From assembly GCA_907165135.1 (NCBI GenBank), contig OU015569.1, forward strand, positions 2,356,001 through 2,420,000: 64,000 nt of DNA. The letters are read 5' to 3'. The translations under genes were made by a program, and so were the position numbers. Origin of the DNA: Oikopleura dioica. Taxonomy: Eukaryota; Animalia; Chordata. This document shows, piece by piece, positions 35,563 to 64,000 of the stretch. Every line of letters begins with the position of its first letter. The stretch's first letter is position 1. The notes beneath the pieces are model-generated. The model ran no database searches. It saw nothing but the letters and a program-made list of their open reading frames with translations, and was not told where the DNA came from.

Positions 35563-38500
35563 ATGGAAGCAAACAATTATGCTTACGAGTGTGATGTCAC
35601 TTCTAGCGGAATGTATGGACACTGCGACTATTGTCACCGGTAAGTCTTCCACAGGAAGTTTAACTTGATATAATTGCCCAAGTTATCCTCCTTCGACTAC
35701 GGAAGTCAGCGGCGCTAGACTCTGTTGGAACTGCTTTCATGAGAAGTACCCAGGAGTTCAAGCAGAATTCCAAGTCTCCGATGCCACTTTCAAATGCCTG
35801 GGCGAATACTGCGAGGAAGAAAGCCTCTCTTATCGTCAGTATATTGCTGGATCTTGCTGTTCGGTCGCCTTGAATTTTACAGTTTGTATGTTTATTCTTT
35901 TGGTGTATTATTATTATTATTCAATATGATAAAATTCAACTAAATTTGCCTAAATGAGATAAATTGACTGAGCTCTCTTTAGGCAATGTGTCCGACACAG
36001 CTTTCTTTGAAATCACGAAATTGTATAAAGAATCAAGGAGAGAGCAAGAGTCCGCTGAGAAAGAGTCGATGGCAGCTGAAGAAGAGCTCGAAGACGCGGA
36101 AAATGAGGTTGAAAAAATAAGAAAGTCCCTCATAAAGGCAAAGGCAACGGTCAAATTTGCGAAACGAAAAGCTAACGCTGCTGAAAAGAATCTCAAAGAA
36201 AGACGAAATTGGAGTGAGACGGTTAGAAAACGTGCTCTTGTCGTTGCGAATGATGCTCTAGGATATGGTGAGTATTCTTTCTTAATAAATGTGCAACAGT
36301 AGTGACTACTTTGATTCTTGTGAGTAGAATGAGGTTTATTTCTAAGGTACAGTGGTTTATAAGAGTGTTTGCAGTTACAGAGTAAACATGGACTTGCGCC
36401 CTTTGACCATGGCGTGATTCTGAATATCGCTGTAGTTGACTACGGGAACTTTCCGTAGTTCTTTTCTGACCTGCACAACCAGCCCCCCCTAAGAAAGAAA
36501 CACCTTATAACCCTGACCTCATTTTCCCTCTTATTTACCTTTCTATCCTATTATCCGATTATCTATCCTATTTTTCGTTAATTCTATCCTAAAAATCCCT
36601 TGTATTCCTCCCCCCTTTTGAAAACTGATTCCCTAATCATACTTAACCTCAAGGTAAAAATCACCATCCACTAGTGTCCAACGAAGGTTGTATTCTGGCC
36701 TATATGGCAGATCGTATGTGCTTATTGCCGCCATCGGGTATTTGCCTGATCCCAGTCCATCCACCTCTTTCAAAACCCCAATCACTGTATGGTCATTCAA
36801 AAAATGATGGTGAAAGATAAGTGACGACGTACACAAGTACATCTGTTTTAACTTTCTCACGTCTGTCGAAGTTGATCGTATGGTGATTCGCCAGGCGTTA
36901 TTTTCAAAGAAGTAAACTTGCGCAAAGTCCTCATTTAGCTCGATTAGCTTATGGATCTTCCGTCTGTCTCCATTCAGTGGGTGATATGGGTTATATAATG
37001 AGTTGAATAATTCGTAGGCGTATTCTTTCAATGTGGCGCCTTCCCTCACTCGCATTGTTTTTATTTCAAGAAGGTCGTCGTCCTTTCTGTCAGTCCGAAG
37101 ATCGTGATCTTGGTCTGCGAATTTGACCGTCCGCTGCAGTTGGTTATTTTCTCCCCTTTTTGTTGCAGTTGTTGTTCCAGCCGTTTCTGTTTCCATTTCT
37201 GACTCATTTCCTGCCGCAGTCGTTTTTACAACTCCAGTTGAATAATTGTCAATCGTGCCTGTATCCGGTGTGCCAGCAACCTCTGGTTCGGCATCCTCTC
37301 CCCCGCCTATTTCCGATCCTACGTCGACGTCGATGACCAGTGATCCATTTTCGACTTCCTCCAAAAAAGTTCGACCTCATTGTTTTCAAGCAGGGCTATT
37401 GAGCGATCCAGGTCAGTAGGGACTTGGTCGATTTCCATTTTCCTAAAACTTATTTTTAACTCATCCTTTGAGCTTTTTTTTAATTCTAGATTTCCTTATT
37501 TTTGGACCAGTTCCCTTTAGAACTGTCTTTCTGTTTGCTCAGTTTCCACTTTCCCTGTTGATGCAAACAATTGCAGCCAGCCACCGCCGGGCTTAACTGA
37601 TTTTCTTTTTACCTACTAAAAGAGAAATTTTTTAACCTATGACCAGAAGTATTTAAGACCGACTAATTTATGCTTTTTCCTACAAACTCTCTTCGTTTTC
37701 TAATCTAAAACAGTTGCAGATAAGTTCCGTTCCCCAGTAGCACGGAAATACTGGCTTAAATTTGTTTTTCGCTTTAATGTCTGTAAGTATCTGAAACGCG
37801 AGTATGTCGAAAAAAAATGCGTCTCTCGTCTCCAGTTTTGGTTTATGGTCAAATTTATACAACTTTAAGAGTTCCTCCAGGTTTTTACCTAAATTCTCCG
37901 TATTACCTACTTCTTGGGTTGCCTCAGTATTAGGGGGATCCGGGAATAAATATGAAGGGGGACTAGTCACTACTGTGGGAATATTAACATATGTACATTC
38001 CGATTCAGAGGAAAAACTCATTGTTATTATTTAAGTGGCAGATAAACCGAACGGCGTCCTTGGTTATTTCGAGTAAACTCCGACGTATCAGTAAGTTGTT
38101 CCTCTTCCGATCTGAACGTCACAATCGGCTCCCGCTGTTTTTTCTGAAAAAGCTTTCTTATGCTTTTAAAGCAGTTTCCACAGCCTACAAAACAGCCTTT
38201 TATGAATTGAAAACCCCTCCGTGTTGCTACAAAGCAACATTTAATCCTCAAATAACAACAATATAGTCCTAAAAGAACTACAGTAACACTCACAGTAATT
38301 ACAGTGTTAATGACCCACTGTGGAGCTATTTTAGATGCCATTGATATTCTCGGAAATTTATCTTCAAGTTTTTCCTTAGATCTTTCAACTAGTGATTTTC
38401 TTAAATCACCAAAATCTAGTGAACCTATTATCTCCGTATCCTCGAAATCTTCTTTTTCTGACAAAAATTTATTAAGTGACGATGTTTTTATTCCTGCCGT

Positions 38501-41074
38501 TATATCATAAAGTTTTACCTCCATCGTATAAGAATTATTTTTAGGGTTAGAAATTTTTCCTCCTACTCGAAATTCCGTTGTCGAACAACGAATCGTCTCC
38601 AGGTTCTCGCTTATCTCTAGCGCAGACACTCCTAATTTATCTCCGCTTTCTCTAACATCTAACTGTATATCCGTTTTTACCCCTGCCTTATCAATTGTCT
38701 GAAAATCACTAAAATGTGAAATCATCACAGTGTTTGACATCAAATCTCTCAAAAATAGGCAATCGGCTGGCAAAAGTAGCACATCGCTACTGCAGCTTGT
38801 CACTGCTTTGCCTGACAGTATTCCCCTAGAACACGGGTCCAGATAACTCTTTGTGATAAGAGATGAGTCGCAAAACCTTACAGCCCCGATCTCCTCGCAC
38901 GCGTCAAGGTTATAGACACGTTTCGATTTTTTGTCCCTGCCTATGATTTTCGGGGTAGACAACCTTAAATACGCGAATTCTTCCTTTTTCTTTCCAGCCG
39001 GAAGTGGTATATGATGGACCCGAAAGGTTTCATCGATTTTGGTTAACGTTGGTACGAAATAACCAATCACGAATTTAATTCCTAACTGTTTTTTGTGTAA
39101 TGTTACCTCAGACTGGACCAGGTCATAATGACCTTTACTGTAAAAATGATCACAGCCTTCCGTCGTCCCTTTGTTTAAATTTTTACAAACTCCACTAATG
39201 GTCCTGAAAACAATATGATTCGGATTTCGATTCAATACCGAAATTTCGAAGTCATGTATCGCGTTCAAGTAGCTGTTAAAATTTTCCATGACAAAATGTC
39301 TGAAGCTTGATTGTTCCAAATTAAGTTCAGAATTGCACCTCTGAAGGAGGTTGGTTTTGATAAGGTTCCTATTTTTGTTAACCTGAATGCCAACTTTCTC
39401 GAGTCCTTTTCCTAAGTTAGCCATCTCTATCTCATCCTCATTTATTCTATGAGTTACTTCCCCAAACTTTTTGTTCTCATTATATGAGTCGTAAAGGGAC
39501 TTTAAAAAGTTGAGAGAACTCAAAATTATCGCTACCTCTCCCGTATCACGCCTTTCCCTATTCGCGTGTCTGCTCCTTGCATTCGGATCTATGGTAATCA
39601 TATAGACCTCAGTTAATACAGTATCTTTGCAACTTCCCTCAAGGTGGTGTCCCCATATCGTCACATCATCCGAATCTAACACATATTCGAACAAAAGGTC
39701 AATCCTATGAAGATTTCTTCCCTTATCCCAGAATTCAGTTTTCACGTGATCCTCCAGATTGTAGTTAAAAAATTCAAATTGTAAATTATCCTCCAAAATC
39801 CTTGTACTTTCAACCTGATATTTAGCGTTTATCAAAATCGAGATTTTTGACTGTTGCTCAAATCTTTTTCTTAGTTGCAACACTACTCTAGCTGGAAAAA
39901 TCTCCGAAAAAAGACTTATTTTAACCCTGTTGTCTTTCTTATCGTTCGAAAAATACGAGCACTGAGTAACGAAGTTAAAACCTGTACTAGTTTTCCTATC
40001 AAAAACAGTTTTCTCCAGCTTTGTATTTGGCCACTCCGAAGGCTTGTCATACAATTTTAGGCTTACTCCACTCGTTGATACCTCACTTGTTATAAACTTG
40101 GGACTAAACTCCTTCTCCCATACCTTCAAGAGTAATATTCCTGAATCTGTCTTATCTAGTCTTGACTGCTGAAACGGTGTGAATTCACTCGGAAGTGCCC
40201 AAAACGAACTTAGTAGTTCATTTGTCAAGATCGTACTTTCCTCAGTATGGTTACCTCTTATAAGACCTAGACAATCCCTAGAGAGCAGATTCTCTTTCGT
40301 TAGTACTGTTGGAAACAGTTCAAAACTCAAAAATTGTCCTTCCTGTGCTTCTACAAAGTAGGAGGGCATTTCCTCAGTAAGAAGGATACCCGAGTCATTT
40401 AATTTTTGTTCCAAAGCGTAAGCAATAGGCGAGCAACTAAGCAGAGCGTAGAGTAGCGCCCAAAAGCGTCTACTCATTTTCTTCTTCTCAAGTTATATCC
40501 TGAACATTGATTTTTAGTATCCGATGATCCTGGAAATTCTAGTTTGAGTTTCAAATCATAATCAAGTGGGCTAAAAACATAGTTATCCATTTTTAGAGAA
40601 TCTAATACTATATTTTCTCACTTCAGTCACCACTTGCAACAGTAGTGACTACTTTGATTCTTGTGAGTAGAATGAGGTTTATTTCTAAGGTACAGTGGTT
40701 TATAAGAGTGTTTGCAGTTACAGAGTAAACATGGACTTGCGCCCTTTGACCATGGCGTGATTCTGAATATCGCTGTAGTTGACTACGGGAACTTTCCGTA
40801 GTTCTTTTCTGACCTGCACAAAATGGATTTTGACTGAAAATATCTTTCAGATGTTTCTTCTCATGACGCCTGCGAGATAAAGAAAGAAGAAGAAGAGACC
40901 GAGATGCACGAATGCAGACTGTGCTATAATCCTTACGGCGATGAGCGACCTGAAGCCGTCGTTATTCCATGCGGATACAAAGCCTGCTTCAACTGCCTAT
41001 CGACTCTCCCGCGGAAAGTATGCCCTCACTGCCGAGCAGAGTTCACTGACGACAAACTTCTCAAGCTCCACTGA
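35563..41074 (+). CDS. Cys-rich N-terminus, coiled coil and C-terminal RING-finger protein (4 exons; LTR element in intron 3)
   Basis: Exons 35563-35639, 35683-35885, 35983-36267 and 40851-41074 join in frame through GT-AG introns. The last exon encodes CRLC...IPCGYKACFNC...VCPHC (RING, with Tyr at the usual His ligand). Confidence 0.85.
36292..36477 (-). repeat. 3' LTR (186 bp)
   Basis: TGTGCAGG...GTTGCA on the minus strand. Contains a TATAAA-like box, AATAAA and an ACTACGG..CCGTAGT hairpin. Identical to 40635-40820. Confidence 0.95.
36478..36491 (-). promoter_or_regulatory. Polypurine tract
   Basis: Minus strand reads TTAGGGGGGGCTGGT, immediately followed by the TG of the 3' LTR. Confidence 0.8.
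36633..37364 (-). CDS. LTR-element ORF3, unknown protein with an acidic/Thr-rich N-half and globular C-half
   Basis: 243-codon open frame with no AUG at its start. An ATG at 37438 would join it with one extra T in the T6 run at 37363-37368 (268 aa). No RT, IN or CCHC motifs. Confidence 0.65.
   Translation of the reverse strand: MEEVENGSLVIDVDVGSEIGGGEDAEPEVAGTPDTGTIDNYSTGVVKTTAAGNESEMETETAGTTTATKRGENNQLQRTVKFADQDHDLRTDRKDDDLLEIKTMRVREGATLKEYAYELFNSLYNPYHPLNGDRRKIHKLIELNEDFAQVYFFENNAWRITIRSTSTDVRKLKQMYLCTSSLIFHHHFLNDHTVIGVLKEVDGLGSGKYPMAAISTYDLPYRPEYNLRWTLVDGDFYLEVKYD
37680..38021 (-). CDS. LTR-element ORF2, 113-aa protein with a PPSY (PPxY) motif
   Basis: ATG 5 nt after the env stop; contains VVTSPPSYLFPDPP. 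Confidence 0.55.
   Translation of the reverse strand: MSFSSESECTYVNIPTVVTSPPSYLFPDPPNTEATQEVGNTENLGKNLEELLKLYKFDHKPKLETRDAFFFDILAFQILTDIKAKNKFKPVFPCYWGTELICNCFRLENEESL
38027..40477 (-). CDS. env: Envelope/fusion glycoprotein (816 aa, intronless)
   Basis: Signal peptide MSRRFWALLYALLSCSPIAYA, furin-type site RERR|DTGEVAIILSSLNFL, heptad region, Cys-rich ectodomain, TM WVINTVITVSVTVVLLGLYCCYL with juxtamembrane Cys, and a basic tail. Located inside LTRs. Confidence 0.85.
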   Translation of the reverse strand: MSRRFWALLYALLSCSPIAYALEQKLNDSGILLTEEMPSYFVEAQEGQFLSFELFPTVLTKENLLSRDCLGLIRGNHTEESTILTNELLSSFWALPSEFTPFQQSRLDKTDSGILLLKVWEKEFSPKFITSEVSTSGVSLKLYDKPSEWPNTKLEKTVFDRKTSTGFNFVTQCSYFSNDKKDNRVKISLFSEIFPARVVLQLRKRFEQQSKISILINAKYQVESTRILEDNLQFEFFNYNLEDHVKTEFWDKGRNLHRIDLLFEYVLDSDDVTIWGHHLEGSCKDTVLTEVYMITIDPNARSRHANRERRDTGEVAIILSSLNFLKSLYDSYNENKKFGEVTHRINEDEIEMANLGKGLEKVGIQVNKNRNLIKTNLLQRCNSELNLEQSSFRHFVMENFNSYLNAIHDFEISVLNRNPNHIVFRTISGVCKNLNKGTTEGCDHFYSKGHYDLVQSEVTLHKKQLGIKFVIGYFVPTLTKIDETFRVHHIPLPAGKKKEEFAYLRLSTPKIIGRDKKSKRVYNLDACEEIGAVRFCDSSLITKSYLDPCSRGILSGKAVTSCSSDVLLLPADCLFLRDLMSNTVMISHFSDFQTIDKAGVKTDIQLDVRESGDKLGVSALEISENLETIRCSTTEFRVGGKISNPKNNSYTMEVKLYDITAGIKTSSLNKFLSEKEDFEDTEIIGSLDFGDLRKSLVERSKEKLEDKFPRISMASKIAPQWVINTVITVSVTVVLLGLYCCYLRIKCCFVATRRGFQFIKGCFVGCGNCFKSIRKLFQKKQREPIVTFRSEEEQLTDTSEFTRNNQGRRSVYLPLK
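40617..40632 (-). promoter_or_regulatory. Primer-binding-site-like sequence
   Basis: TGGTGACTGAAGTGAG, 2 nt downstream of the 5' LTR; TGG is complementary to a tRNA CCA end. Confidence 0.7.
40635..40820 (-). repeat. 5' LTR (186 bp)
   Basis: Base-for-base identical to 36292-36477 on visual comparison. Confidence 0.95.
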
Positions 41075-44700: not shown

Positions 44701-47700
44701 GTTCACGCCAGACTCCGAGAAACCGCTGGGCGCAGTGTAGAGAAATGAGCCTCAATAAAAGCAAACAACGCATATCTACTGCTCAGGTACTTATTCATTC
44801 ATTTCAAAAGACTTTGTTCAAGGTGTCTTTTAGAAAGATCTTGATGGAATCCTCAACATTGAAACCGAACAAAGAAATGCCTTGGCCGCCGTTAGTCGTA
44901 TTCTTAATCAATATTCATCACACAGGTTAGCTGTCATAATGCATACAGTATCTATTTTTTAATTAAATTCGAAAGGATAAGTTCAAATGCCTCGTGGTAG
45001 AATATAAATAAGCTGACAAACAGACAGCTCTCGAATAAGGCTTGTTCAGAGCATCTGCATGCGCTGACGCCCGACATCACCCGCGACGGAGCCGCAACAC
45101 CGATGCTGTGAATATGTCTGTTTACCGCAATACAGCCTCAGGTTTTTTCTCCTGTCGATTATGGGATGCACTCTAACACGATCTAATATAGCTCTCCTCT
45201 ACCCACATAGAAGTCACAATCTTGTTCTATGGACGGCAAAACATCCGACCTACTGTACAAATTGTGAGGGACTTCTTTGGGGAATCACCAGGGCGCGTAT
45301 CTTCTTAGCGTGTACATAACATACAGTTTATCTCTTTTGATACCTTGTCCTATGCGATTAAGTACTTGATGTAAGATCCGTGAATAGACAAGGTCTCAAA
45401 TGCTCTGACTGCGGGGTCAAATGTCACGAGAGGTGCAGAGACATGCTTTCTATTGATTGTCTCCAGCGTGCTGCTAGCAAAAAGAGCTCCAACAAAAATG
45501 ACACCCAGGAATTAAAGGAGTCGATGCTCCAACTGATCCAAGGCCGTCTTAAAACTGCTGCAGAGGAGCTGAAATTACTGGCGAATATCTTCAGTTTGAC
45601 GCCAAGCGAATCCCAGCGAAATCTAGACTTGGTGAAAGACAAGTTGCTGAAGAAAGATTTGATCTGGTCGGCGAAGCTGAAAGTGACAGTTGTGGAAGCA
45701 AGAGGACTCATGCCAATGGACAAGAACGGGCTCTCAGATCCGTATTGCGCAGTTCAAGTTGGCAAGCATCACAAAAACACGACGACAAAGAAAGAAACCC
45801 TCGATCCAAAGTGGAATGAATCATTCGACTTCAAAGTTGAGAGCGCGCGTGAGTCCATTAAAATACGAATCTGGGATGAGGACGATGATCTGCGAAGTCG
45901 ACTGAAAGACAAAATCCTACGAGAAGCGGATGACTTTCTCGGCCAAGTTGTGATTGACATACGCTCGATCACAGGTGACTCGGATAGCTGGTACGAGCTG
46001 CAACCAAGGACAGCGAAAACAACAATCAAGGGGAGCATTCGGATAAAGATTAGCATGACACGGAAAACTGACATTGATGGGGATGAAAAATTAGCGACAA
46101 TTCCAAATCAATTTCTGATTCTTCACAGCCACATTCTTTCATATCTCCAAGACCTCACTGGAAACTCTAATTCCTCGAAAACAAGTCCGATAATTTCCTG
46201 CTCTAGTTCGGGACAAGTCTCCGTTTCCAACAGAATCGCCCAGAAAATTCTGGATTCCTTCACGAAGCACTACGGCATCACAAAGATCTTCATTCAAATG
46301 GCCACATTCGGACATTTGACCGAAAACTTAAATATGATCGACGCGGCAGAAACACTTTGGATTATTTCTGGACATGCCATTGAGCATTATTGGAACGGGG
46401 TTAATATTTTATCAAGACAAGTAGCTCCCATGGCACAAAGTTTGAACATGAATAATACTGATCAAAATCTCAGCTCGCAAAGAATTTTTTTTTCGTGCAT
46501 AATTCGTTAAAATTTAAACCCTGATCTAGCCATGAACCTAACACGGCTCATCTGACAATGGATGAGCGCTTGTACGCATCAAATATCCAAAAGCGCAACT
46601 TGAGTGGACAGGTGAAAAAGGCAGAAATGTTCATCCGATTGAAGCTGAACTCCTATCGCATGCACTATGGAAAAAATTTGAATGAGCCGACCGCGCACAA
46701 TTTGGAACTCTCGCTCAAGATACTCATCAAACTCGTTGAGTTCAAGGAGAAAGTCTTGAAGGAGAACAACAGCAAGCTCGACGAAATGATTCTCGACTGC
46801 TGCAGTAAATGCCACGAAATTACGTACGGGAATGTTTTTCACGAAGCAGAAGAGTATCAAGTAAGAGCATCAATTGCAGGCTCAGTTGATGATGGAGACG
46901 GACTCTGGCAGGAAAAGTTGGCGTATTCTTGTAACACAGATATTTTTAAGAGTTTTCAAAAACTTGTATCCTAACTAGAAACAGCAACAGGGTGAAAATA
47001 CTGAGTCGAGTTGTGACCACTCAGCTCCACTGGAATTCTGGGAGCGTTTCTTGCGATGCGTTGTTTCACTTGTAGAAGAAGATATGGTCTACTACTCGCC
47101 CATTTTCACCTCCGTTATTCCCGATCTAAAGCTAACAACCTGCTCGGCGGTAAAGTTTTGGTCGATGTTGCTAAATGACTTGGTCGGGTTTTTGGAGCAC
47201 GAGTCGGATTGCCGCCATTGGTCAACTACTTCCGACTACATGAAGCTTCAAAAGCTTGTCAAGGAGGTTTACGAGAGGCTGAGTGCGATGATTGATGATA
47301 AAAATTTCACTGGATTAGGAATGAGTTTAAAACTGCCAAGCATCGAATGAAAGAGTCGTCGTTGATTGCACTTTTGAAAACTCATAAAAAGCCCCTTATG
47401 CTGAGCACTTCATTCCTTTCACTTGCATTTGGCTGGACGACTGTATAATTGAATACTGTAAATATGTAGAGAAAAGCTATCAGCTCGATGAGTCTGACGG
47501 CTTTCAGCGAACAAACGAATACGTCAAATTCTCCAGCTCAGTTGTTGACTTGTTCGACATGCTTAATCAGCTGGGAGCGTCTACATCAAAACTGCGCTCA
47601 GACTGCCACAAATTTAATGGAATACTAGGACTCGTCTCATAAATACAAATTGAGTTAATTTTGCATTCAGTGTTATTGAAGTTCCTATTCTGAGACTATT

Positions 47701-56025: not shown

Positions 56026-56196
56026 CCAAGAGAGAGAACAATTTGACGAGAAGACTTGATGCCACACGGTCCGCTCGTAGTGTCTGAGCGAGTCTGTTGA
56101 TTCGGCGGTTCTGTTTCAGAGGCTGCGGTGCGGTCTTTCTCTGTTGCTATCTTGTACGAGCTGTGACGAATGAGAAGTAGTGCCCCCCACTAACAA

Positions 56197-59100
56197 ATGG
56201 TGGTGGAGGACGATGATGAACTGAATTCATCTTCCCGTCGCAAAAATAGAACAGAAGATGCAAGGATAAATGAGGATGAAAGAACAACATCCTCATGGTC
56301 TAACAAAAACGGTCAAAATACCCCCACGCAGCCAGAGCGTGGTAGGCGGTTAGACTCAAAAAGCACCGATGACGTGGAGGGTGACAGCAGGTCGAGCAGA
56401 TGGGATCTCGGAGGCGAGCGTCGCCTCGTCAACACGAAAGATGACCATAAAAGCCGATCATGGATATCAGAGAAATTCAACGAGCCTCAGGAATTGAGGT
56501 TCCTCCCTCCATGCACTCCACGTCGCAGAGCGCGAAGCGAGGACGAGTCGATGATGATGAGTCCCAAGCCAAAAAGTCAAGAGACGACCCTCACAACCAA
56601 TCACCACCTGCTAGAGGCTACACTCCGAGTTTCCGCGGTAAGAACAAAAGAGGCCGTGGACGTGGTAGAGGACGTGGCGCTGGCAGAGGCTCGGCCTTCC
56701 GGGCAAACAGAGGTGAGCTTTCAAAACGTACCCATTATATCAAACCCCTTTTCACAAGGCACGCAACGGGAACATGGCCAAGACAACATCAATCGGCCCA
56801 ACCAACCGCGTCGGCTCTTTGCTGGAATAGGAATCGATGATGGACGGGCGTCATCCTCGACCAATGACGCCGAAAGGAACACCAAAATTGTGAGGATCGA
56901 AGACATTAGGCACTATCCAGAGAATATCCCCATGGTAGAAGAACTTTTCGACGAGCGGGGAAAATTCCTCAGAAAGGAAAACGGGCACAATTACATCGCC
57001 AGCTCGGCTAAGGAACTTCTCACATACGAATACACCATGGACAAGATGATCATATTCAAAAAGGTCAAGTTTCACGAAGAGCGCTTTTACGAGGACATCA
57101 TCGCGAATGGAAGATTCCCACGAACTGGAATCATGCTCGACATGGACTGGATCCCCCCAAGCTGGAAGAATATGGAGTATGACCTTCATATAATCACATC
57201 GGTCACAGTATTCGTGATGCAAGACACACTCGACAAATTGTGCATCCCAATGAAAGATATCAAATCCATGATAGTCATCAAAGAGGACGGTTCACTAGTA
57301 CCCCTCAACTCAGGGGCGCTAACAGAAAACAAGAAGGCAACTGTAAGGGGCATACAGTTCTACTCTACAGTCTCCGCGCTGAAGATGATAACGCTGGCCA
57401 ACGAGTGCCTGTCGCCGGTAGACCCCTTCTACGGCTGCAATAAGATACCTAGAATGGCGATGTTCTGGTGCTCCACAGAGCGCAAAGACAGATTGGGGCA
57501 CTCGGCAATGGTTGCCACTCCCAATTGTGGAAAGACGATCATCGAAGTTCTATGCGCCGTCCTGAAACGCTACATGTACTACATTCGGAAATGCGGAGAA
57601 TTCTACACCTTTCACAGCAAGAGCAACGTCATCAACGTTCTCCCGCTACGAACTATCTTCGACCTGTCACTCAAGGAAATGGAGGATGAGAAATTCTCTC
57701 CCTCGTATGACAGGTTCAAGGATTGGATGAACCTCTACAAACCCTACGTGTTCGACAGAAGATGCGCGGCCATGTCAGTGTCCATTGAGAGATTCCATCA
57801 TCAAATGACCAAAACGGTACTCGCAATGCAAGAATACCATCTGGGCCGTGGCAACTCGCACTGGTTTACTATGTCCACCGACGACGCGTTCAAGATGAAG
57901 GTGAAGGATCAACAAGAGATCGCCAACGTCACGGAGGGAAAGATTACGATCGCCGATGTTGGTGCCAACCCTGACATTGGCATGTTTCGACCTGAGATCG
58001 CCAAAAGAAAAGGGGTATTTATGAACGATCTTGACAGGGTACGAGACGAACCAAGAGCGTGTGACAGCATCAAGCACATGGCCGGCGGCTCAGTTCAGGA
58101 GGTATCCGACGAACTCAAAAGAGTGGTCGAACAAACAAAGGACCAAGAGGAGGCTATCTCCAACGTCATGCTTTTCAGTCACTCCAACAACCGACAAGCC
58201 CTGAACTTTATGATCGAGATGCAAGCTATTAACACCAAACACGCAACTACGGTAGAGGAGAAGAGTGAAAAGCAAAATCTACTCGCCAAAATGCAAATCT
58301 ATCGAAAAGAGCACAAGCTCCTATTCGACACCGACCCAACGTTGCTGGGAACTGTTAAAAGAAGTGTCGGGGAGCAGATAGAATGGGGCGTAAATACGAG
58401 GAACGCGAACGGCGATAAATACCGGGTGCCAATTGCTGAATACCTCAAGGATGGACAAGGCGATCAAACGACGAAAATCGCGACTATCAAGACGAAGGAC
58501 CCGGAGTATAAATTCAACATTGCTGAATTCTACATGCAAGCCGGAAGTGAAGTCGCCCAGAAGTACATCCCTCCTGTCAAGGAAGATGCGAGGGTTCAAC
58601 CGATGGATGATGATGAAGCACCATCCTCCGTCCAAAACATTAGCCATCCCTTAGATAAATGTCAGAATGATGGTACATCGTCTATGGGCAGGGAGAGCAA
58701 AGGAGAGGACACAGATCTGGAATCGCTCCTAGATGAAGATGAAAAGAAGAAATCTCTGGAAGCAGCGAAGCTCACCGAGCCCAAACAATACCTGATTAAA
58801 CAAATGATGAAAGCAGCGAATGTGAGGATGTCAGCCTTCACGGACGATGATGCCTCTGAGGTATCGGTCTTCTGCAGCGCAGTCAGCCCGCCGGATGTGG
58901 CCAACGTAGCTGAAGTGGTGACTCCGAACCTAGTACAAATTTCAAAGATAGACAAAGGAAAGCCAGTGGACAAGGAAGTCATCGAAAACACCGGGTCTAT
59001 CGTAAGCAATGCTAAGGCAAAATGGAACGCCATCTCACCCGCCGAGGAAGAATCGTCATGGAGGAACACGGTCGCTGTCTATAGATCCGCGGATGAATTC

Positions 59101-62100
59101 CTGGAGAAAGAGAACCTTCAATCGTACCCCGACCCTGAGGCGTTCACGAAGGCTCAGACATTGGCGGAGTGTGCAAGGACTGACCTGGAAAACACGATTA
59201 GGAGATACATACAGTCTAGCAACAAAAATGACATTAACACGGCCTGTCGGAAATGGCAATCCCTGATTTACGGACTAAGGGGATCTCTGATTAATCGATT
59301 GGAGAAACTCATCAACTGCGCGGAGGGCGAGTCTGCAGCCTCTTTAGGCCTAAACGACCCGGAAAAGCTCAAAGAATGGAACGGTTTCCTGAGAGCAAAC
59401 CGGAACTTCAGGGAGGTGTTACACGACCCTGAGAAGCTAACCGTGCTTCATTGCTGCGACCCGGACGTCCTATCTCAAGACATGCCAGTCCCCAAATCAC
59501 TAGCGATCTACAACTATGTGAAACTGGCTGGAATGGAGATGAACATCGACTGCACAAAGACGTGTGCCAACATCGTCATGAGCCAGCTGGTCGCGCTTGG
59601 ACTAATCGTCACTAGCAGAAGAACTCACGCTGCAGTATACAATCCGGGCGAGCTGCCGGGACAACATCTTCTTAAATCGAAGCCCATCTTTGTTAGAGTA
59701 ATTAAGGTAGGCCCAGATTTTACACACAAAAGGTGGTTAATGGCCAAAGAGTTTGTAAGGACAGTTGCAATTAAGGAGTACAAGCAAGAACTTGACTTCA
59801 CTATAGACGACGTCCCCGACCTAGCCATGAATGAGCCACTTTTTCAGCTGTTTATAAATGAATTCTGGAGGAAGGTGGTGGCTAACAACCTCACGCTGGG
59901 GTTTAGAATCTGGATGAGGAAGCATGACTATCTAACATCATGCTCTTTTAGGGGTCTCACTAACGAAGATGACTCAAACTGTACAGACGGACTACCAGAC
60001 CTCCCCCATCCCCCACTCACCATCACCTTCAAACAATTCAAGAACCTGTGCGAGATACAAAGAATGAAGAACAAAACACACAAGGTAAATGATATCATTA
60101 GAAGTGGAGAGGTACCCAAAATGCCAATTAGTCATGATATTCCATCCCCCCATGTATTTGCCAAAGGGAGAGGCCTAGAAGGAGTATTACCTGCGGCTGA
60201 GAATCTCCCCAAACTTAAACGATCGAGTAAAAACATCATCCCAACTGAAGGGGATCTAGAGAAAGCCGTGACAGAACATAATGAAAAGGTTGTCTCTGCT
60301 GCAGACAACCTAACAGTTGTATGCGCCAATCTTGGAAAGTGCTCCACGCTGGACAAGATTAAAAAACTGGTCAGAAGGCACCGAGGAGCCCACATCTTCA
60401 CGGTGGCAGAGTTGTTTATCGAAAGAGATATGGCGTTAGACAGAGATAATTGGCCCGACGGATATCGTATACTGGCAGGCCAAGGGTCGACTGATGGGAA
60501 AAACCAATGCTTTTCCTTGATAGTAATTAGGTCTAACATAAAGGTTCTAAGGACAATCAACTGTCTACATCAAAACGCTGGGGCGCTATTGGACGTCAAC
60601 GGCATCGAGATCTACATATTCTCAGTATACAACTTCTGCAACTCAGCCTTCGATGGGTACAAGAACAAGTTCGGCGTCAGCAGAGATGTCCTATACGAAG
60701 ACCTCAACAAAATGAGGATGATGAGCACCGACCATCCTGCTATAATCGCAGGTGACTTTAATGTACAAGTCAATAATCCTAGGTGTCATGAGAGGAGTCA
60801 AGCGGACAAGATCCAGGCAGCAATGGACGGGTTCGAAAGGCTCACTAACTTCGTTACATTCAGGAGAGACTGTAAGAATGGGCGCACGATGGAGAGCTGT
60901 ATCGATCATATCTACTTCTCACCCGGGAAAATCGACACCAACGAGATCTCCTGCAAGCCTGCCGATCACAGGACATCACTCGGGTCAGACGGTCACTGCG
61001 GAGTCATCTGCGAAATCCCAATCAGAGCTCCCGAAGGCAAAATATGGAAACTCTGGAAGGTACCGGACCAGAAGGAGAAAGATGAATGTTATAAAATAGG
61101 TATGAAAATGATGCTAAATAATATCGAAAAACTAGATAGGATGAAAGGCGACATGGATGAGGTCCAGCTAAGGCATGAAATTTTGGTGCAATATGCTCAG
61201 AAAACTCGGCCACTAGTCGACAAAATTAAGGTAACAGATCCTTATAAAATTGTGCAATCAAAAGCTACCAAAGAATGGCTGCAAGCTGGCTTCTACATCG
61301 AAAACCTCATAAAACAGAGCAAGATCGACGAAGTGCCACGAAGATGGTGGATCAGCATCGTCGACCTGTGGAATGAAATAAAGAAGATGATTGTGAAACT
61401 GAAGTGCGCGGACCGTAGATACCATCTTGCAAGAAAGTGTGACCCCGAGGAGCTATCTCTAACCGACTCTTGGGGCCTCTTTGGGCGCGAAATCAAGACA
61501 GCGAATGCACTCAGCATAGACGGCACGCCAAACCAGATTGCCGAAGAATTCGTACAATTACAGAGAAACACGAGTCCGGAGCTAGAAGGTTGTGTCGGAG
61601 ACAAAGACGACCGCCTAACCACGTTACCAAAAGTATGTATAGAAAGATTCCGCGTGCACCCATGCGGAAAACTGCCAGCACTGGTAACAGTGTATAAAAA
61701 GTCCAAAAAAGCGACATGTGATGTCTTTAATATTAATAAGACTTGTCTAGAAACGCTGCCGCTCATAGGAGTACTGACGCTGGTCATCATGCCTGTAATG
61801 CTTGCTCTTCGAAACGGTAAGCTACTAAGAGTATGGAACTGCAACAGGGTAGTCCCAATACTTAAAAAGAACCTAAAGAAGCGACCTATAACCATCGCGT
61901 CCACAATAGGCAGTCTGGCAGAGAAAATGGTCTGCAAAACCTTCACGGACTATGTAATGCACTATGGCATAGTACCAAGTGTACAGTTTGGGTTTCGAAA
62001 AGCAAACAGCTGCGGAGCGGCTGTGTACCACTGTGCCAAGACGTTGTCCATGGCCATAGCTCCACAATTTGTGGATCATTGCGGCAGACAATTAGAGGAA

Positions 62101-64000
62101 GTAGTAGGAGGTATGGTCCTCATCGATGCCGCCAATGCGTTTGGCACGGTGGCTCATCCTCTGCTGATGAGCCTCCTGGGCCAATTCTGCTCGGATCTGT
62201 TCCTAGGATTCATTGAATCATTTTTGATCAGGTCCTTTAAAGTATGCATAAGGGGTTTCCTTAGCGAGGAAAAAGAACTAGAGGCTTTTGGGTTGCCTCA
62301 AGGCTCATCCTTGTCACCCATTGCATACAGCGTATTCAGCGCGGGCTTTCTTAAAAACCTCCGTTTAGATCCCGCTGAAGATAACTCTACCTGCGCCGAT
62401 GGGGCACAAACGATGTGCAACTGCGATCATCATCCGGGTGGACGAACGAGCTGCCTCGAAAACGGTTTGATCCTTGGCGAAAGAAAGGACGACAATGACA
62501 TTAGCGTTATAGCCGGACAGAAAGCCGCCTTCGCGGACGATCTGGCTGCATTGATCATCGCGCCAAACTCAACGGAAGCCGCCGTATCCCTGACATCCAC
62601 GATCAGCCGAGCTACTAAGGAGATCAATGAAAAAGGGCTCAAGGTCGCTGAAACGAAGACAGAATGCTTCTTTGTCAGTAAGTCTAAGATCCCCGAGGAA
62701 ATAACCTTTAACTCAACCACCATCAAAGCAAGTGAAAGCGTCAAGTACTTAGGAATTACCCTATCGGCAGAAAGAGGCAAAATATCCTATAGAATGCATG
62801 ACATGAACGTCATGAGGAGGATGAGGGCGAATCATCATAAACTCATGACTCTTAAAGGAACGATATCACCAGTAGCAAATGCCAATATGGCAAGAGCTCT
62901 GGACATCGGAGTCATTAACCACGGAGCGGACTACAAGCCACTACCTTGCATCTCTATCACCAAGAGTTGGCAAAAGATTTATTGTTATACCCTGGCTAGG
63001 GTCTCGCCAAGGCCATGGTATATTGTGGAAATGGAAAGAAAGCTAATCCTTGAGGGAGGAAACCTATCCTCAATAATGAGAACGCACGAACCTCTCTGGG
63101 TTTCACTGAATTATCAGAGACTTGTAGTAGGAAAGCCCAGAGCGGACGAAGGGCTCGAAACGCTGGACAGATTCCGGCAGCCAACAATCTTTGATAACCT
63201 GATCTGCATGGCTATCAACAATATGCATAAGGTATTCAGATTGCGCACACCGGACACAGCGTGGAAAGCTCTGAGAGGTTGTCTCATCATGGTCAATGAA
63301 AGAGGAGAAAGCATTGGTCCGTTATTCGATTTCGGACGATGTGACAGATACACCGAACACCTTAGTGAGGAAACTAGATTTAGTGATGTTAGAAAATATG
63401 GGTTGTTCACATCGAAAGAACACAGTCACATAACTAAACTACGTTTGAATAGAGCCAGATTTAGGGCACTCTTCAATGCACAGGCTGTGACAGTGCGGTT
63501 CACCCTACCTAGGTCTCAGGATAACGGTCTGAGAATTGACAGGACGCAATGGCCCTACAACATGATGGCTCATTTTAACGATCTGCCTGCAAGTGTAAGG
63601 GCGGACTTTGTGCAAGATTGGTTTCCGAGCAGTCTAAAGAGATTTATGAAAGACAAACATAAACACTGGAAACGAAAAATTTGGTGTGAAAAATGTAGAT
63701 ATAGTTCCCCGTTCTATAACTATGATCTGCAAGTCGAGCTAGGAGACGCTCATCAAGTTACTAGAAGCGCGAAAAGAACGTATAGCACAAAGGAGGACAT
63801 AAAAAGAGACAAGGAATACGATAAGTTATATGCAGAAATGCAGAATAACCAGGAAGACGCAAGCAAAATCCTGTCCATGCTCATTTGGTGGAGGCCATAC
63901 AGGCTCAATAATGTAGCATTCAAGGACTTCGAGGCTATAATGCAAGTCATTCGATACCTGATGGCATATAAAGGATCAGGCACAGATATCATGCGCTTGC
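56197..64000 (+). CDS. Single polyprotein of more than 2,600 aa: unknown N-terminal region, APE endonuclease, reverse transcriptase
   Basis: Manual translation of frame +1 shows no stop from ATG 56197 to the window end. APE motifs LTVVCANL (60310), IFTVAE, IAGDFN, IDHIYF and SDGH (to about 61000). RT motifs VVPILKK, RPITI, QFGFR, LIDAANAF, LPQGSSLSP, FADD (62530) and KYLGI. Confidence 0.93.
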   Translation, partial: MVVEDDDELNSSSRRKNRTEDARINEDERTTSSWSNKNGQNTPTQPERGRRLDSKSTDDVEGDSRSSRWDLGGERRLVNTKDDHKSRSWISEKFNEPQELRFLPPCTPRRRARSEDESMMMSPKPKSQETTLTTNHHLLEATLRVSAVRTKEAVDVVEDVALAEARPSGQTEVSFQNVPIISNPFSQGTQREHGQDNINRPNQPRRLFAGIGIDDGRASSSTNDAERNTKIVRIEDIRHYPENIPMVEELFDERGKFLRKENGHNYIASSAKELLTYEYTMDKMIIFKKVKFHEERFYEDIIANGRFPRTGIMLDMDWIPPSWKNMEYDLHIITSVTVFVMQDTLDKLCIPMKDIKSMIVIKEDGSLVPLNSGALTENKKATVRGIQFYSTVSALKMITLANECLSPVDPFYGCNKIPRMAMFWCSTERKDRLGHSAMVATPNCGKTIIEVLCAVLKRYMYYIRKCGEFYTFHSKSNVINVLPLRTIFDLSLKEMEDEKFSPSYDRFKDWMNLYKPYVFDRRCAAMSVSIERFHHQMTKTVLAMQEYHLGRGNSHWFTMSTDDAFKMKVKDQQEIANVTEGKITIADVGANPDIGMFRPEIAKRKGVFMNDLDRVRDEPRACDSIKHMAGGSVQEVSDELKRVVEQTKDQEEAISNVMLFSHSNNRQALNFMIEMQAINTKHATTVEEKSEKQNLLAKMQIYRKEHKLLFDTDPTLLGTVKRSVGEQIEWGVNTRNANGDKYRVPIAEYLKDGQGDQTTKIATIKTKDPEYKFNIAEFYMQAGSEVAQKYIPPVKEDARVQPMDDDEAPSSVQNISHPLDKCQNDGTSSMGRESKGEDTDLESLLDEDEKKKSLEAAKLTEPKQYLIKQMMKAANVRMSAFTDDDASEVSVFCSAVSPPDVANVAEVVTPNLVQISKIDKGKPVDKEVIENTGSIVSNAKAKWNAISPAEEESSWRNTVAVYRSADEFLEKENLQSYPDPEAFTKAQTLAECARTDLENTIRRYIQSSNKNDINTACRKWQSLIYGLRGSLINRLEKLINCAEGESAASLGLNDPEKLKEWNGFLRANRNFREVLHDPEKLTVLHCCDPDVLSQDMPVPKSLAIYNYVKLAGMEMNIDCTKTCANIVMSQLVALGLIVTSRRTHAAVYNPGELPGQHLLKSKPIFVRVIKVGPDFTHKRWLMAKEFVRTVAIKEYKQELDFTIDDVPDLAMNEPLFQLFINEFWRKVVANNLTLGFRIWMRKHDYLTSCSFRGLTNEDDSNCTDGLPDLPHPPLTITFKQFKNLCEIQRMKNKTHKVNDIIRSGEVPKMPISHDIPSPHVFAKGRGLEGVLPAAENLPKLKRSSKNIIPTEGDLEKAVTEHNEKVVSAADNLTVVCANLGKCSTLDKIKKLVRRHRGAHIFTVAELFIERDMALDRDNWPDGYRILAGQGSTDGKNQCFSLIVIRSNIKVLRTINCLHQNAGALLDVNGIEIYIFSVYNFCNSAFDGYKNKFGVSRDVLYEDLNKMRMMSTDHPAIIAGDFNVQVNNPRCHERSQADKIQAAMDGFERLTNFVTFRRDCKNGRTMESCIDHIYFSPGKIDTNEISCKPADHRTSLGSDGHCGVICEIPIRAPEGKIWKLWKVPDQKEKDECYKIGMKMMLNNIEKLDRMKGDMDEVQLRHEILVQYAQKTRPLVDKIKVTDPYKIVQSKATKEWLQAGFYIENLIKQSKIDEVPRRWWISIVDLWNEIKKMIVKLKCADRRYHLARKCDPEELSLTDSWGLFGREIKTANALSIDGTPNQIAEEFVQLQRNTSPELEGCVGDKDDRLTTLPKVCIERFRVHPCGKLPALVTVYKKSKKATCDVFNINKTCLETLPLIGVLTLVIMPVMLALRNGKLLRVWNCNRVVPILKKNLKKRPITIASTIGSLAEKMVCKTFTDYVMHYGIVPSVQFGFRKANSCGAAVYHCAKTLSMAIAPQFVDHCGRQLEEVVGGMVLIDAANAFGTVAHPLLMSLLGQFCSDLFLGFIESFLIRSFKVCIRGFLSEEKELEAFGLPQGSSLSPIAYSVFSAGFLKNLRLDPAEDNSTCADGAQTMCNCDHHPGGRTSCLENGLILGERKDDNDISVIAGQKAAFADDLAALIIAPNSTEAAVSLTSTISRATKEINEKGLKVAETKTECFFVSKSKIPEEITFNSTTIKASESVKYLGITLSAERGKISYRMHDMNVMRRMRANHHKLMTLKGTISPVANANMARALDIGVINHGADYKPLPCISITKSWQKIYCYTLARVSPRPWYIVEMERKLILEGGNLSSIMRTHEPLWVSLNYQRLVVGKPRADEGLETLDRFRQPTIFDNLICMAINNMHKVFRLRTPDTAWKALRGCLIMVNERGESIGPLFDFGRCDRYTEHLSEETRFSDVRKYGLFTSKEHSHITKLRLNRARFRALFNAQAVTVRFTLPRSQDNGLRIDRTQWPYNMMAHFNDLPASVRADFVQDWFPSSLKRFMKDKHKHWKRKIWCEKCRYSSPFYNYDLQVELGDAHQVTRSAKRTYSTKEDIKRDKEYDKLYAEMQNNQEDASKILSMLIWWRPYRLNNVAFKDFEAIMQVIRYLMAYKGSGTDIMRL
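56460..56840 (+). CDS. Overlapping 126-aa basic RG-rich ORF inside the retrotransposon 5' region
   Basis: Frame +3 ORF with KRGR and RGRGRGRGRGAGRG, overlapping the main frame. Confidence 0.5.
   Translation: MDIREIQRASGIEVPPSMHSTSQSAKRGRVDDDESQAKKSRDDPHNQSPPARGYTPSFRGKNKRGRGRGRGRGAGRGSAFRANRGELSKRTHYIKPLFTRHATGTWPRQHQSAQPTASALCWNRNR

Follow-up and report, generated by a model that had tools for sequence, protein, structure and literature searches.

How could an element that retains a complete retroviral envelope gene, but neither gag nor pol, come to be integrated in a chordate genome? This question is raised by a 64,000-nt stretch of the Oikopleura dioica genome (assembly GCA_907165135.1, contig OU015569.1, positions 2,356,001 to 2,420,000 of the forward strand; hereafter the window, with positions numbered from its first letter), in which a long terminal repeat (LTR) retroelement with an intact env gene occupies positions 36292-40820. 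In the original prediction, made from the letters of the window, it was described as an env-only element of a satellite-like lineage, mobilised in trans by a gag-pol helper to which it might supply a fusogen in return. Our analysis indicates instead that it is very probably a young, internally deleted copy of a Tor-like Ty3/gypsy endogenous retrovirus with an F-type env, and a dead-end by-product of the full-length family.

The element lay on the minus strand throughout. The only pair of direct repeats detected by a repeat finder between 35 and 42 kb, at 40635-40820 (5' LTR) and 36292-36477 (3' LTR), was 100% identical, and a 40-nt probe from the LTR matched just these two sites in the 64 kb, where zero matches were expected. 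The finder itself reported a length of 187 nt (36292-36478 and 40635-40821), which includes one flanking base matching by chance; the true LTR is 186 bp long, begins with TG and ends with CA when read on the minus strand, and contains TATAAA and AATAAA motifs. Comparison of the flanks revealed an intact target-site duplication of 5 bp, which reads CATTT on the minus strand and has its 5' copy at 40821-40825 and its 3' copy at 36287-36291. A 13-nt primer-binding site (PBS, 40620-40632), starting with TGG, lies 2 nt past the 5' LTR, and a polypurine tract (PPT, 36483-36490), an A followed by seven G, lies 5 nt before the 3' LTR; no tRNA gene that would name the primer of the PBS was present in the window. 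With its LTRs, target duplication, PBS and PPT, the element is by structure an LTR retrotransposon or endogenous retrovirus. In all these features the original prediction was borne out, as it was for the complete env of 816 codons (38027-40477), which starts with an ATG 141 nt after the PBS.

The description of the element as env-only did not hold. Two further open reading frames (ORFs) separate env from the PPT: ORF2 of 113 codons (37680-38021), whose ATG is 6 nt past the env stop, and ORF3 of 243 codons from stop to stop (36633-37364), which has no ATG at its start. A 47-codon open stretch (40474-40617) leads from the PBS to env, and its TGA stop overlaps the env ATG (ATGA). As env, ORF2 and ORF3 occupy 3.5 of the 4.16 kb of internal sequence, no room is left for gag-pol. 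Pfam scans of these three ORFs revealed no gag, protease, reverse transcriptase, ribonuclease H or integrase domain, and the Gag and Pol proteins of related elements, used as queries, found no match in the element beyond eight codons at the very end of pol. This is not an autonomous Ty3/gypsy element, which would carry gag and a pol encoding protease, reverse transcriptase, ribonuclease H and integrase. Thus, the earlier statement that no gag or pol sequence is recognisable was right as regards domains and matches to Gag and Pol, but missed what we read as the last eight codons of pol, retained before the env ATG.

The absence of any difference over the 186 LTR sites bounds LTR divergence at less than about 1.6% (P = 0.05). 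Tor copies show a mean LTR identity of 98.5% (PMC4402516). The bound is no tighter than this average, and identical LTRs as short as these date the insertion only weakly. Moreover, at such a young age every ORF would still be open with or without selection, so the open frames are uninformative on selection.

The chance of an open frame of 816 codons was about 5e-23 per start, given the element's own stop-codon frequency. The encoded protein has a signal peptide, a single R-E-R-R cleavage-type site at aa 307-310 (R-x-R-R) and, in its C-terminal part, a hydrophobic transmembrane segment (about aa 717-752) and, after it, a Cys-rich tail. A Pfam scan, a word-indexed protein search and an exact-protein look-up gave no result for it, and comparison with the PDB by sequence returned chance-level matches only. 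A HMMER scan of 1.84 billion cluster representatives, which stand for 15 billion proteins, detected 15 relatives at E<=1e-3 (best 4.8e-41), with identities of 24-32%. Since the best representative was only 32% identical, no protein at least about 50% identical is present among the 15 billion. In the alignment of the 16 sequences the arginine of the cleavage site, eight ectodomain cysteines and several prolines were invariant or nearly so, and the element's Env keeps every residue that is invariant in the family.

An AlphaFold model of Env, built on the alignment of the relatives, was of moderate quality overall, with a mean predicted local distance difference test score (pLDDT) of 59.5 and a predicted template modelling score of 0.41, and its core at aa 380-600 had a pLDDT above 80. 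In the model, a helix of about 70 residues directly follows the cleavage site. The top 50 fold matches in the PDB were all F proteins of paramyxoviruses or pneumoviruses (E down to 2.8e-7), and those in BFVD included baculovirus F/Ld130 and paramyxovirus F0. By its predicted fold, the product of the 816-codon ORF is thus an F-type class I viral fusion glycoprotein. The Env criteria described for Tor3b/4b consist of an F-x-G motif, an N-[L/V]-G motif set between aromatic residues, and seven cysteines upstream of the transmembrane segment (PMC4402516). The only F-x-G of the element's Env sits in the cytoplasmic tail, its single N-L-G is without flanking aromatics, and its conserved ectodomain cysteines number eight, as against seven. 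The claim that a functional fusogen was kept stands insofar as the gene for a viral-type fusion glycoprotein, with an F-type fold as modelled, is intact, and the element, if transcribed, could still make Env from its own LTR; the supply of this Env to a helper is unsupported.

The relatives of Env all came from metagenome assemblies (ENA, JGI and Logan), several of them from Tara or other marine samples. A pol product stood directly upstream of env in seven of the nine distinct contexts fetched, with RVT_1, RT_RNaseH or rve domains wherever it was scanned with Pfam; as for the other two, the upstream product of L017 was unscanned and truncated by the end of the contig, and L012 had only a pol tail upstream of env. 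In L001, L005, L007 and L011, pol was in turn preceded by gag, and L001, L002 and L003 proved to be circular permutations of one 12.7-kb unit. Downstream, a small ORF begins at or just past the env stop and is followed by one to three more ORFs. The expectation that env lies downstream of gag-pol, as in Tor elements, thus applies to the relatives found here, which also carry ORFs after env. The order of env, small ORF, larger ORF, PPT and LTR in the element is thus the 3' half of the architecture of these relatives. Additionally, the element's PBS recurs upstream of gag in three of them (12-13 nt in L001 and L007, 11 nt in L005), which indicates the use of the same primer and ties the cis signals of the element to this group. 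Alignment of the element's LTR with the relatives, on the other hand, gave nothing alignable beyond the PBS. Compared with the gag-pol elements sharing LTR termini and PBS for which the original prediction proposed to search, these relatives share the PBS but not the LTR, and they carry env.

The junction between the PBS and env appeared to preserve a trace of the missing genes. Read in the frame in which a TGA overlaps the env ATG, the sequence before env ends in GYNLRRRK-stop (40500-40477), and the C-termini of Pol in the relatives read NYNLRSRR (L001), KYNLRRRK (L004), GYNLRRKK (L008) and KYNLRSRR (L012), with the ATGA overlap of the pol stop and the env start common to the element and these four loci. 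The codons for Leu and Arg vary among the loci, so what the loci share is protein sequence rather than a DNA signal. When the 64 kb was translated in six frames (90,407 residues), a pattern matching all these variants of the tail occurred once, in exactly this register, and the fragment was the window's top match to profiles built from alignments of the relatives' Pol tails in their natural form. The 47-codon frame is open back to the edge of the PBS, which has a chance of 0.05. We conclude from these comparisons that the eight codons before the env ATG are what is left of the C-terminal end of pol. Together with the ATGA overlap, this tail indicates that pol formerly preceded env, and a native env-first gene order, which we had considered, was rejected on these grounds.

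Taken together, the homology of Env, the same pol/env junction and the same PBS as in gag-pol-env elements point to descent from such an element, and we read the absence of gag and pol as the outcome of one internal loss. This is at odds with the predicted satellite-like lineage, and it matches what the original prediction had itself set against that lineage, namely a one-off deletion of a full-length element. The ancestor would have had the order LTR-PBS-gag-pol-env-accessory ORFs-PPT-LTR, of which LTR-PBS-pol tail-env-ORF2-ORF3-PPT-LTR would remain. The lost block would begin a short way past the PBS and end no more than 120 nt short of the pol stop, and it would measure about 5.5-6 kb, since the PBS is 5.8 kb from the env ATG in L001.

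As to the mechanism, we infer that the loss probably took place before integration, the inserted DNA having been copied from a subgenomic RNA or having arisen by a template jump. In either case Gag and Pol from a full-length sibling would do the copying and would be needed for one event only. According to Henriet 2015 (PMC4402516), the env mRNA of Tor3a starts in the 5' LTR and is spliced from a donor near the start of gag to an acceptor a short way upstream of env. A DNA copy of a spliced env mRNA of this type would have exactly the order of LTR, PBS, short leader, pol tail, env and so on to the second LTR, and our leading, though tentative, candidate for the subgenomic RNA is a spliced mRNA of the env type, in which a leader exon would be joined to an acceptor within the 3' end of pol. 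A template jump or an aberrant strand transfer during reverse transcription seems an unlikely alternative. By either of these routes no env-only lineage is established, and the element is unable to copy itself.

Several observations weigh against this view of the junction and its origin. The E-values of the matches to the pol-tail profiles were weak (0.12-0.16), only the last 8 of the 47 codons could be assigned to pol, and the other 39 were no closer to Pol tails than shuffled sequences, 1097 of 3000 shuffles reaching the sum score. Furthermore, the PBS still has a donor-like GTGAG motif at its 3' edge, and sites resembling acceptors persist before env; a canonical splice at these sites would have removed them, so a splice, if any, used other sites. 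No conserved position of an env splice acceptor was found in the relatives. Finally, no full-length sibling with this LTR was found in the window or in the public collections searched, which precludes assigning the junction to a donor and acceptor pair or to microhomology.

The insertion site bears on the next possibility. The element was found in an intron of a host gene on the plus strand (GTGAGT...TTTCAG, 36268-40850), 19 nt downstream of the donor and 25 nt upstream of the acceptor, and in antisense orientation to this gene. The flanking exons, which encode a coiled-coil region (35964-36267) and, in the last exon, a RING finger followed by a stop (40851 to about 41000), read through in frame. 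Without the element and one copy of the duplication the intron would measure 49 nt, as against 4,583 nt now. An intron this small is in keeping with an Oikopleura-like genome. In a genome as compact as this one, shortening of an intron swollen from 49 nt to 4.6 kb may be favoured, and a full-length copy may have inserted recently and then lost gag-pol by a deletion in the host genome, in which case the deleted form neither existed as an RNA nor transposed. We regard such a post-integration deletion as somewhat unlikely. It would equally be expected to leave identical LTRs and an intact duplication, so they do not, together with the open env, attest to recent replication of the deleted form, as had been supposed; only one copy with this junction is known; and the leader of the element is without GAATCCACGC, a motif that follows the PBS in L001 and L007, as if a putative packaging region might be gone and packaging in trans might be inefficient. 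On the other side, both breakpoints fall in narrow windows that spare the PBS and the pol/env overlap with the env start. Such narrow breakpoints are predicted by RNA processing or reverse transcription and not by random deletion, and they speak for a loss before integration, although this argument is weakened by ascertainment, as the element was flagged for being tidy. A deletion in the host genome would also have to precede any substitution in the LTRs, which is a weak constraint at 186 bp. One copy cannot decide among the spliced-RNA, template-jump and post-integration routes.

Loss of gag-pol before integration, which we prefer, would have been a single event here, but it could also recur. 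One relative from another lineage, L012 (L012:1-668; ENA ERZ27250700, k141_1735081), encodes an Env of 907 aa and has about 45 codons of a pol tail upstream of env. These codons are 64% identical to those of L004, and the env DNA is 68% identical to that of L004 over 2.2 kb, whereas the 530 nt further upstream have no similarity to L004 pol; the PBS of the family was not found in the L012 contig. The break and the env ATG are separated by much the same distance as in the element. L012 may be a second copy without gag-pol and with a similar breakpoint, and the common break may mark a common splice acceptor; equally, the contig may have been chimerically assembled from short reads, or the copy may have decayed. 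We consider it quite improbable that, in this group of tunicate-type retroviruses, elements with env and accessory ORFs but without gag-pol arise repeatedly as a heritable by-product or make up a true lineage of non-autonomous elements, formed from reverse-transcribed spliced env mRNA and spread by full-length siblings, in which case the break found some 140 nt ahead of the env ATG, both in the element and in L012, would mark the acceptor.

An established non-autonomous lineage, with env under selection, which a gag-pol helper would mobilise in trans and which would perhaps supply Env to that helper in the manner of a two-component retrovirus, is highly improbable in our view. The complete cis signals and the intact env with all family-invariant residues would fit it, and as this Env has no close public relative, unsampled siblings may exist; L012, too, has env after only about 45 pol-tail codons, preceded by unrelated sequence. 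However, open frames are expected at the age of the element even if env is not selected, and pol stands directly upstream of env in the seven of nine contexts mentioned above; the upstream product of L017 was truncated and unscanned, which leaves L012, perhaps chimeric or decayed, as the single exception. No further copy was found in the 64-kb window, and the other copies with the same junction that the original prediction would have led one to expect were absent from JGI metagenomes and IMG/VR as well, which leaves one known copy. In JGI metagenomes, a pattern combining the LTR end with the PBS gave just two matches, both by chance and in chemoreceptor genes of bacteria; in IMG/VR it gave no match, an Env-based locus search in IMG/VR gave nothing, and neither a helper nor a sibling sharing the element's LTR was found in the window or in the public collections searched. 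Finally, that the PBS-to-env join is a mis-assembly or a collapsed full-length element is hardly credible, as the join lies in unique sequence and not in a repeat, the LTRs, the duplication, the host intron and the exon frame are coherent, and there are no Ns in the window.

The two ORFs downstream of env were less readily placed. ORF2 matches in position the ORFs of 107-168 codons that directly follow env in the relatives, but its similarity to these small ORFs was not significant, and it was not among the window's top matches to a profile made from them; for this reason a short Ser/Thr-rich motif spotted in ORF2 by eye was dropped. ORF3 fills most of the 1.55 kb from env to the 3' LTR, and its open length has a probability of about 2e-7 by chance; there may be one discontinuity of the frame near its 5' end, or ORF3 may be reached in some other way. 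Pfam scans of ORF2 and ORF3 revealed no domain. For ORF3, a word-indexed protein search found no homologue, a sequence search of the PDB gave chance-level matches only, and a single-sequence structure model had a mean pLDDT of 35.7, which makes it unusable and gives no confident fold. The identification of ORF3 with the conserved last ORF of the relatives was rejected, as the profile comparison returned a probability of 0.02. The counterparts of ORF2 and ORF3 in the relatives are themselves barely alignable with one another.

That last ORF before the LTR forms a conserved unannotated family in the relatives (L001:12595-13215, L004:7835-8665, L007:468-1598 and L005:10852-11682), with a shared C-terminal region. 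Two relatives carry a RING-finger ORF downstream of env (L005:10263-10823 and L007:10998-11462, 39% identical to each other), an accessory gene that, to our knowledge, is unusual among LTR retroelements. A 59-nt unit is repeated in tandem about nine to ten times in L001:1-605, directly upstream of the putative LTR and leader of the 12.7-kb element. The leader of the O. dioica element contains an ATG-initiated upstream ORF of 38 codons (40592-40474, minus strand), which ends at the TGA overlapping the env ATG, and around its start there is a stretch of 51 nt, GTGAG...TTTTTAG, with the size and ends of a mini-intron.

Elsewhere in the window, a non-LTR retrotransposon of the long interspersed nuclear element (LINE) type occupies 56194-63999 of the plus strand, with one frame of more than 2,600 codons that runs off the end of the window. 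It encodes Exo_endo_phos (aa 1385-1578) and RVT_1 (aa 1889-2190) domains behind an unusually long N-terminal extension of more than 1,380 aa, and the region has a raised GC content of 0.46-0.50 and a strong skew of A over T. This ORF may belong to the Odin family reported for Oikopleura, and the presence of such a retrotransposon, like the 49-nt intron, would suit an Oikopleura genome. The plus strand also carries, at 45380-46510, a large exon that encodes C1 and C2 domains and belongs to a homologue of unc-13 (Munc13). Named sequences matched it at no more than 40% identity, whereas fragments of it were 99% and 92% identical in ENA and JGI metagenome contigs, indicating that the host species or a close relative has been sampled in environmental data.

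Which known systems does the element resemble most? In mouse Fv-4 and chicken ev6, retroviral loci without gag-pol keep an expressible env, as the element has lost gag-pol and kept env. Those loci are usually 5'-truncated and old enough for selection to have made them host defence genes, whereas the element is young and complete in its LTRs, PBS and PPT. A functional gag-pol is also lacking, and LTR, PBS and PPT are likewise retained, in LTR elements that are non-autonomous and move in trans (ETn, mobilised by MusD; deleted forms of IAP; LARD and TRIM), and like them the element would depend on proteins of a sibling. They are, however, multi-copy families with a known autonomous partner and are not known to keep env, in contrast to the single copy with env, and with no partner known, described here.

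The closest counterparts are the Tor elements of O. dioica itself, which, like the element, are LTR elements of the Ty3/gypsy type, reside in a compact chordate genome and carry as their third gene one for a furin-cleaved transmembrane glycoprotein. They also have target duplications of 4-5 bp, near-identical LTRs and low-copy recent insertions (PMC4402516), as observed for the element, and the architecture of the spliced, LTR-driven env mRNA of Tor3a (PMC4402516) would be the one frozen in it. The described Tor copies carry gag and pol, both of which the element lacks, and the F-x-G and aromatic-flanked N-[L/V]-G motifs of Tor3b/4b Env are missing from its ectodomain. As the Tor groups are defined by Pol phylogeny and the element has lost its pol, it cannot be assigned to any of them; by its probable descent, it belongs with Tor-like Ty3/gypsy elements with an F-type env. 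Ty3/gypsy errantiviruses with such an env occur in metazoans, including tunicates, in which the F-type elements are sister to Tor4b (eLife 2026, PMC13524379). Their Env has the fold of paramyxovirus and baculovirus F, as predicted for the element, and their order of GAG-POL-ENV with LTRs is that of the element's relatives. That survey consists of intact three-ORF elements (PMC13524379), whereas the element is without two of the three, and its Env is 23-32% identical to the nearest sequences.

Set against these systems, the Env, by its modelled fold, is a deep-branching F-type fusogen at most about 32% identical to the representatives of 15 billion public proteins; with it, the F-type env genes whose spread among invertebrate retroelements was recently described gain one more lineage. 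If the route through a subgenomic RNA is true, the element would be a genomic record of such an env RNA of a Tor-like retrovirus, fixing the join of leader and env, and it would show that such RNAs can occasionally be copied and inserted in the germ line of a chordate whose genome is very compact. Beyond the divergent Env and this possible record, the element finds no support as part of a two-component retrovirus and is, next to the Tor elements and errantiviruses with which it compares, an ordinary defective provirus that keeps an LTR-driven env.

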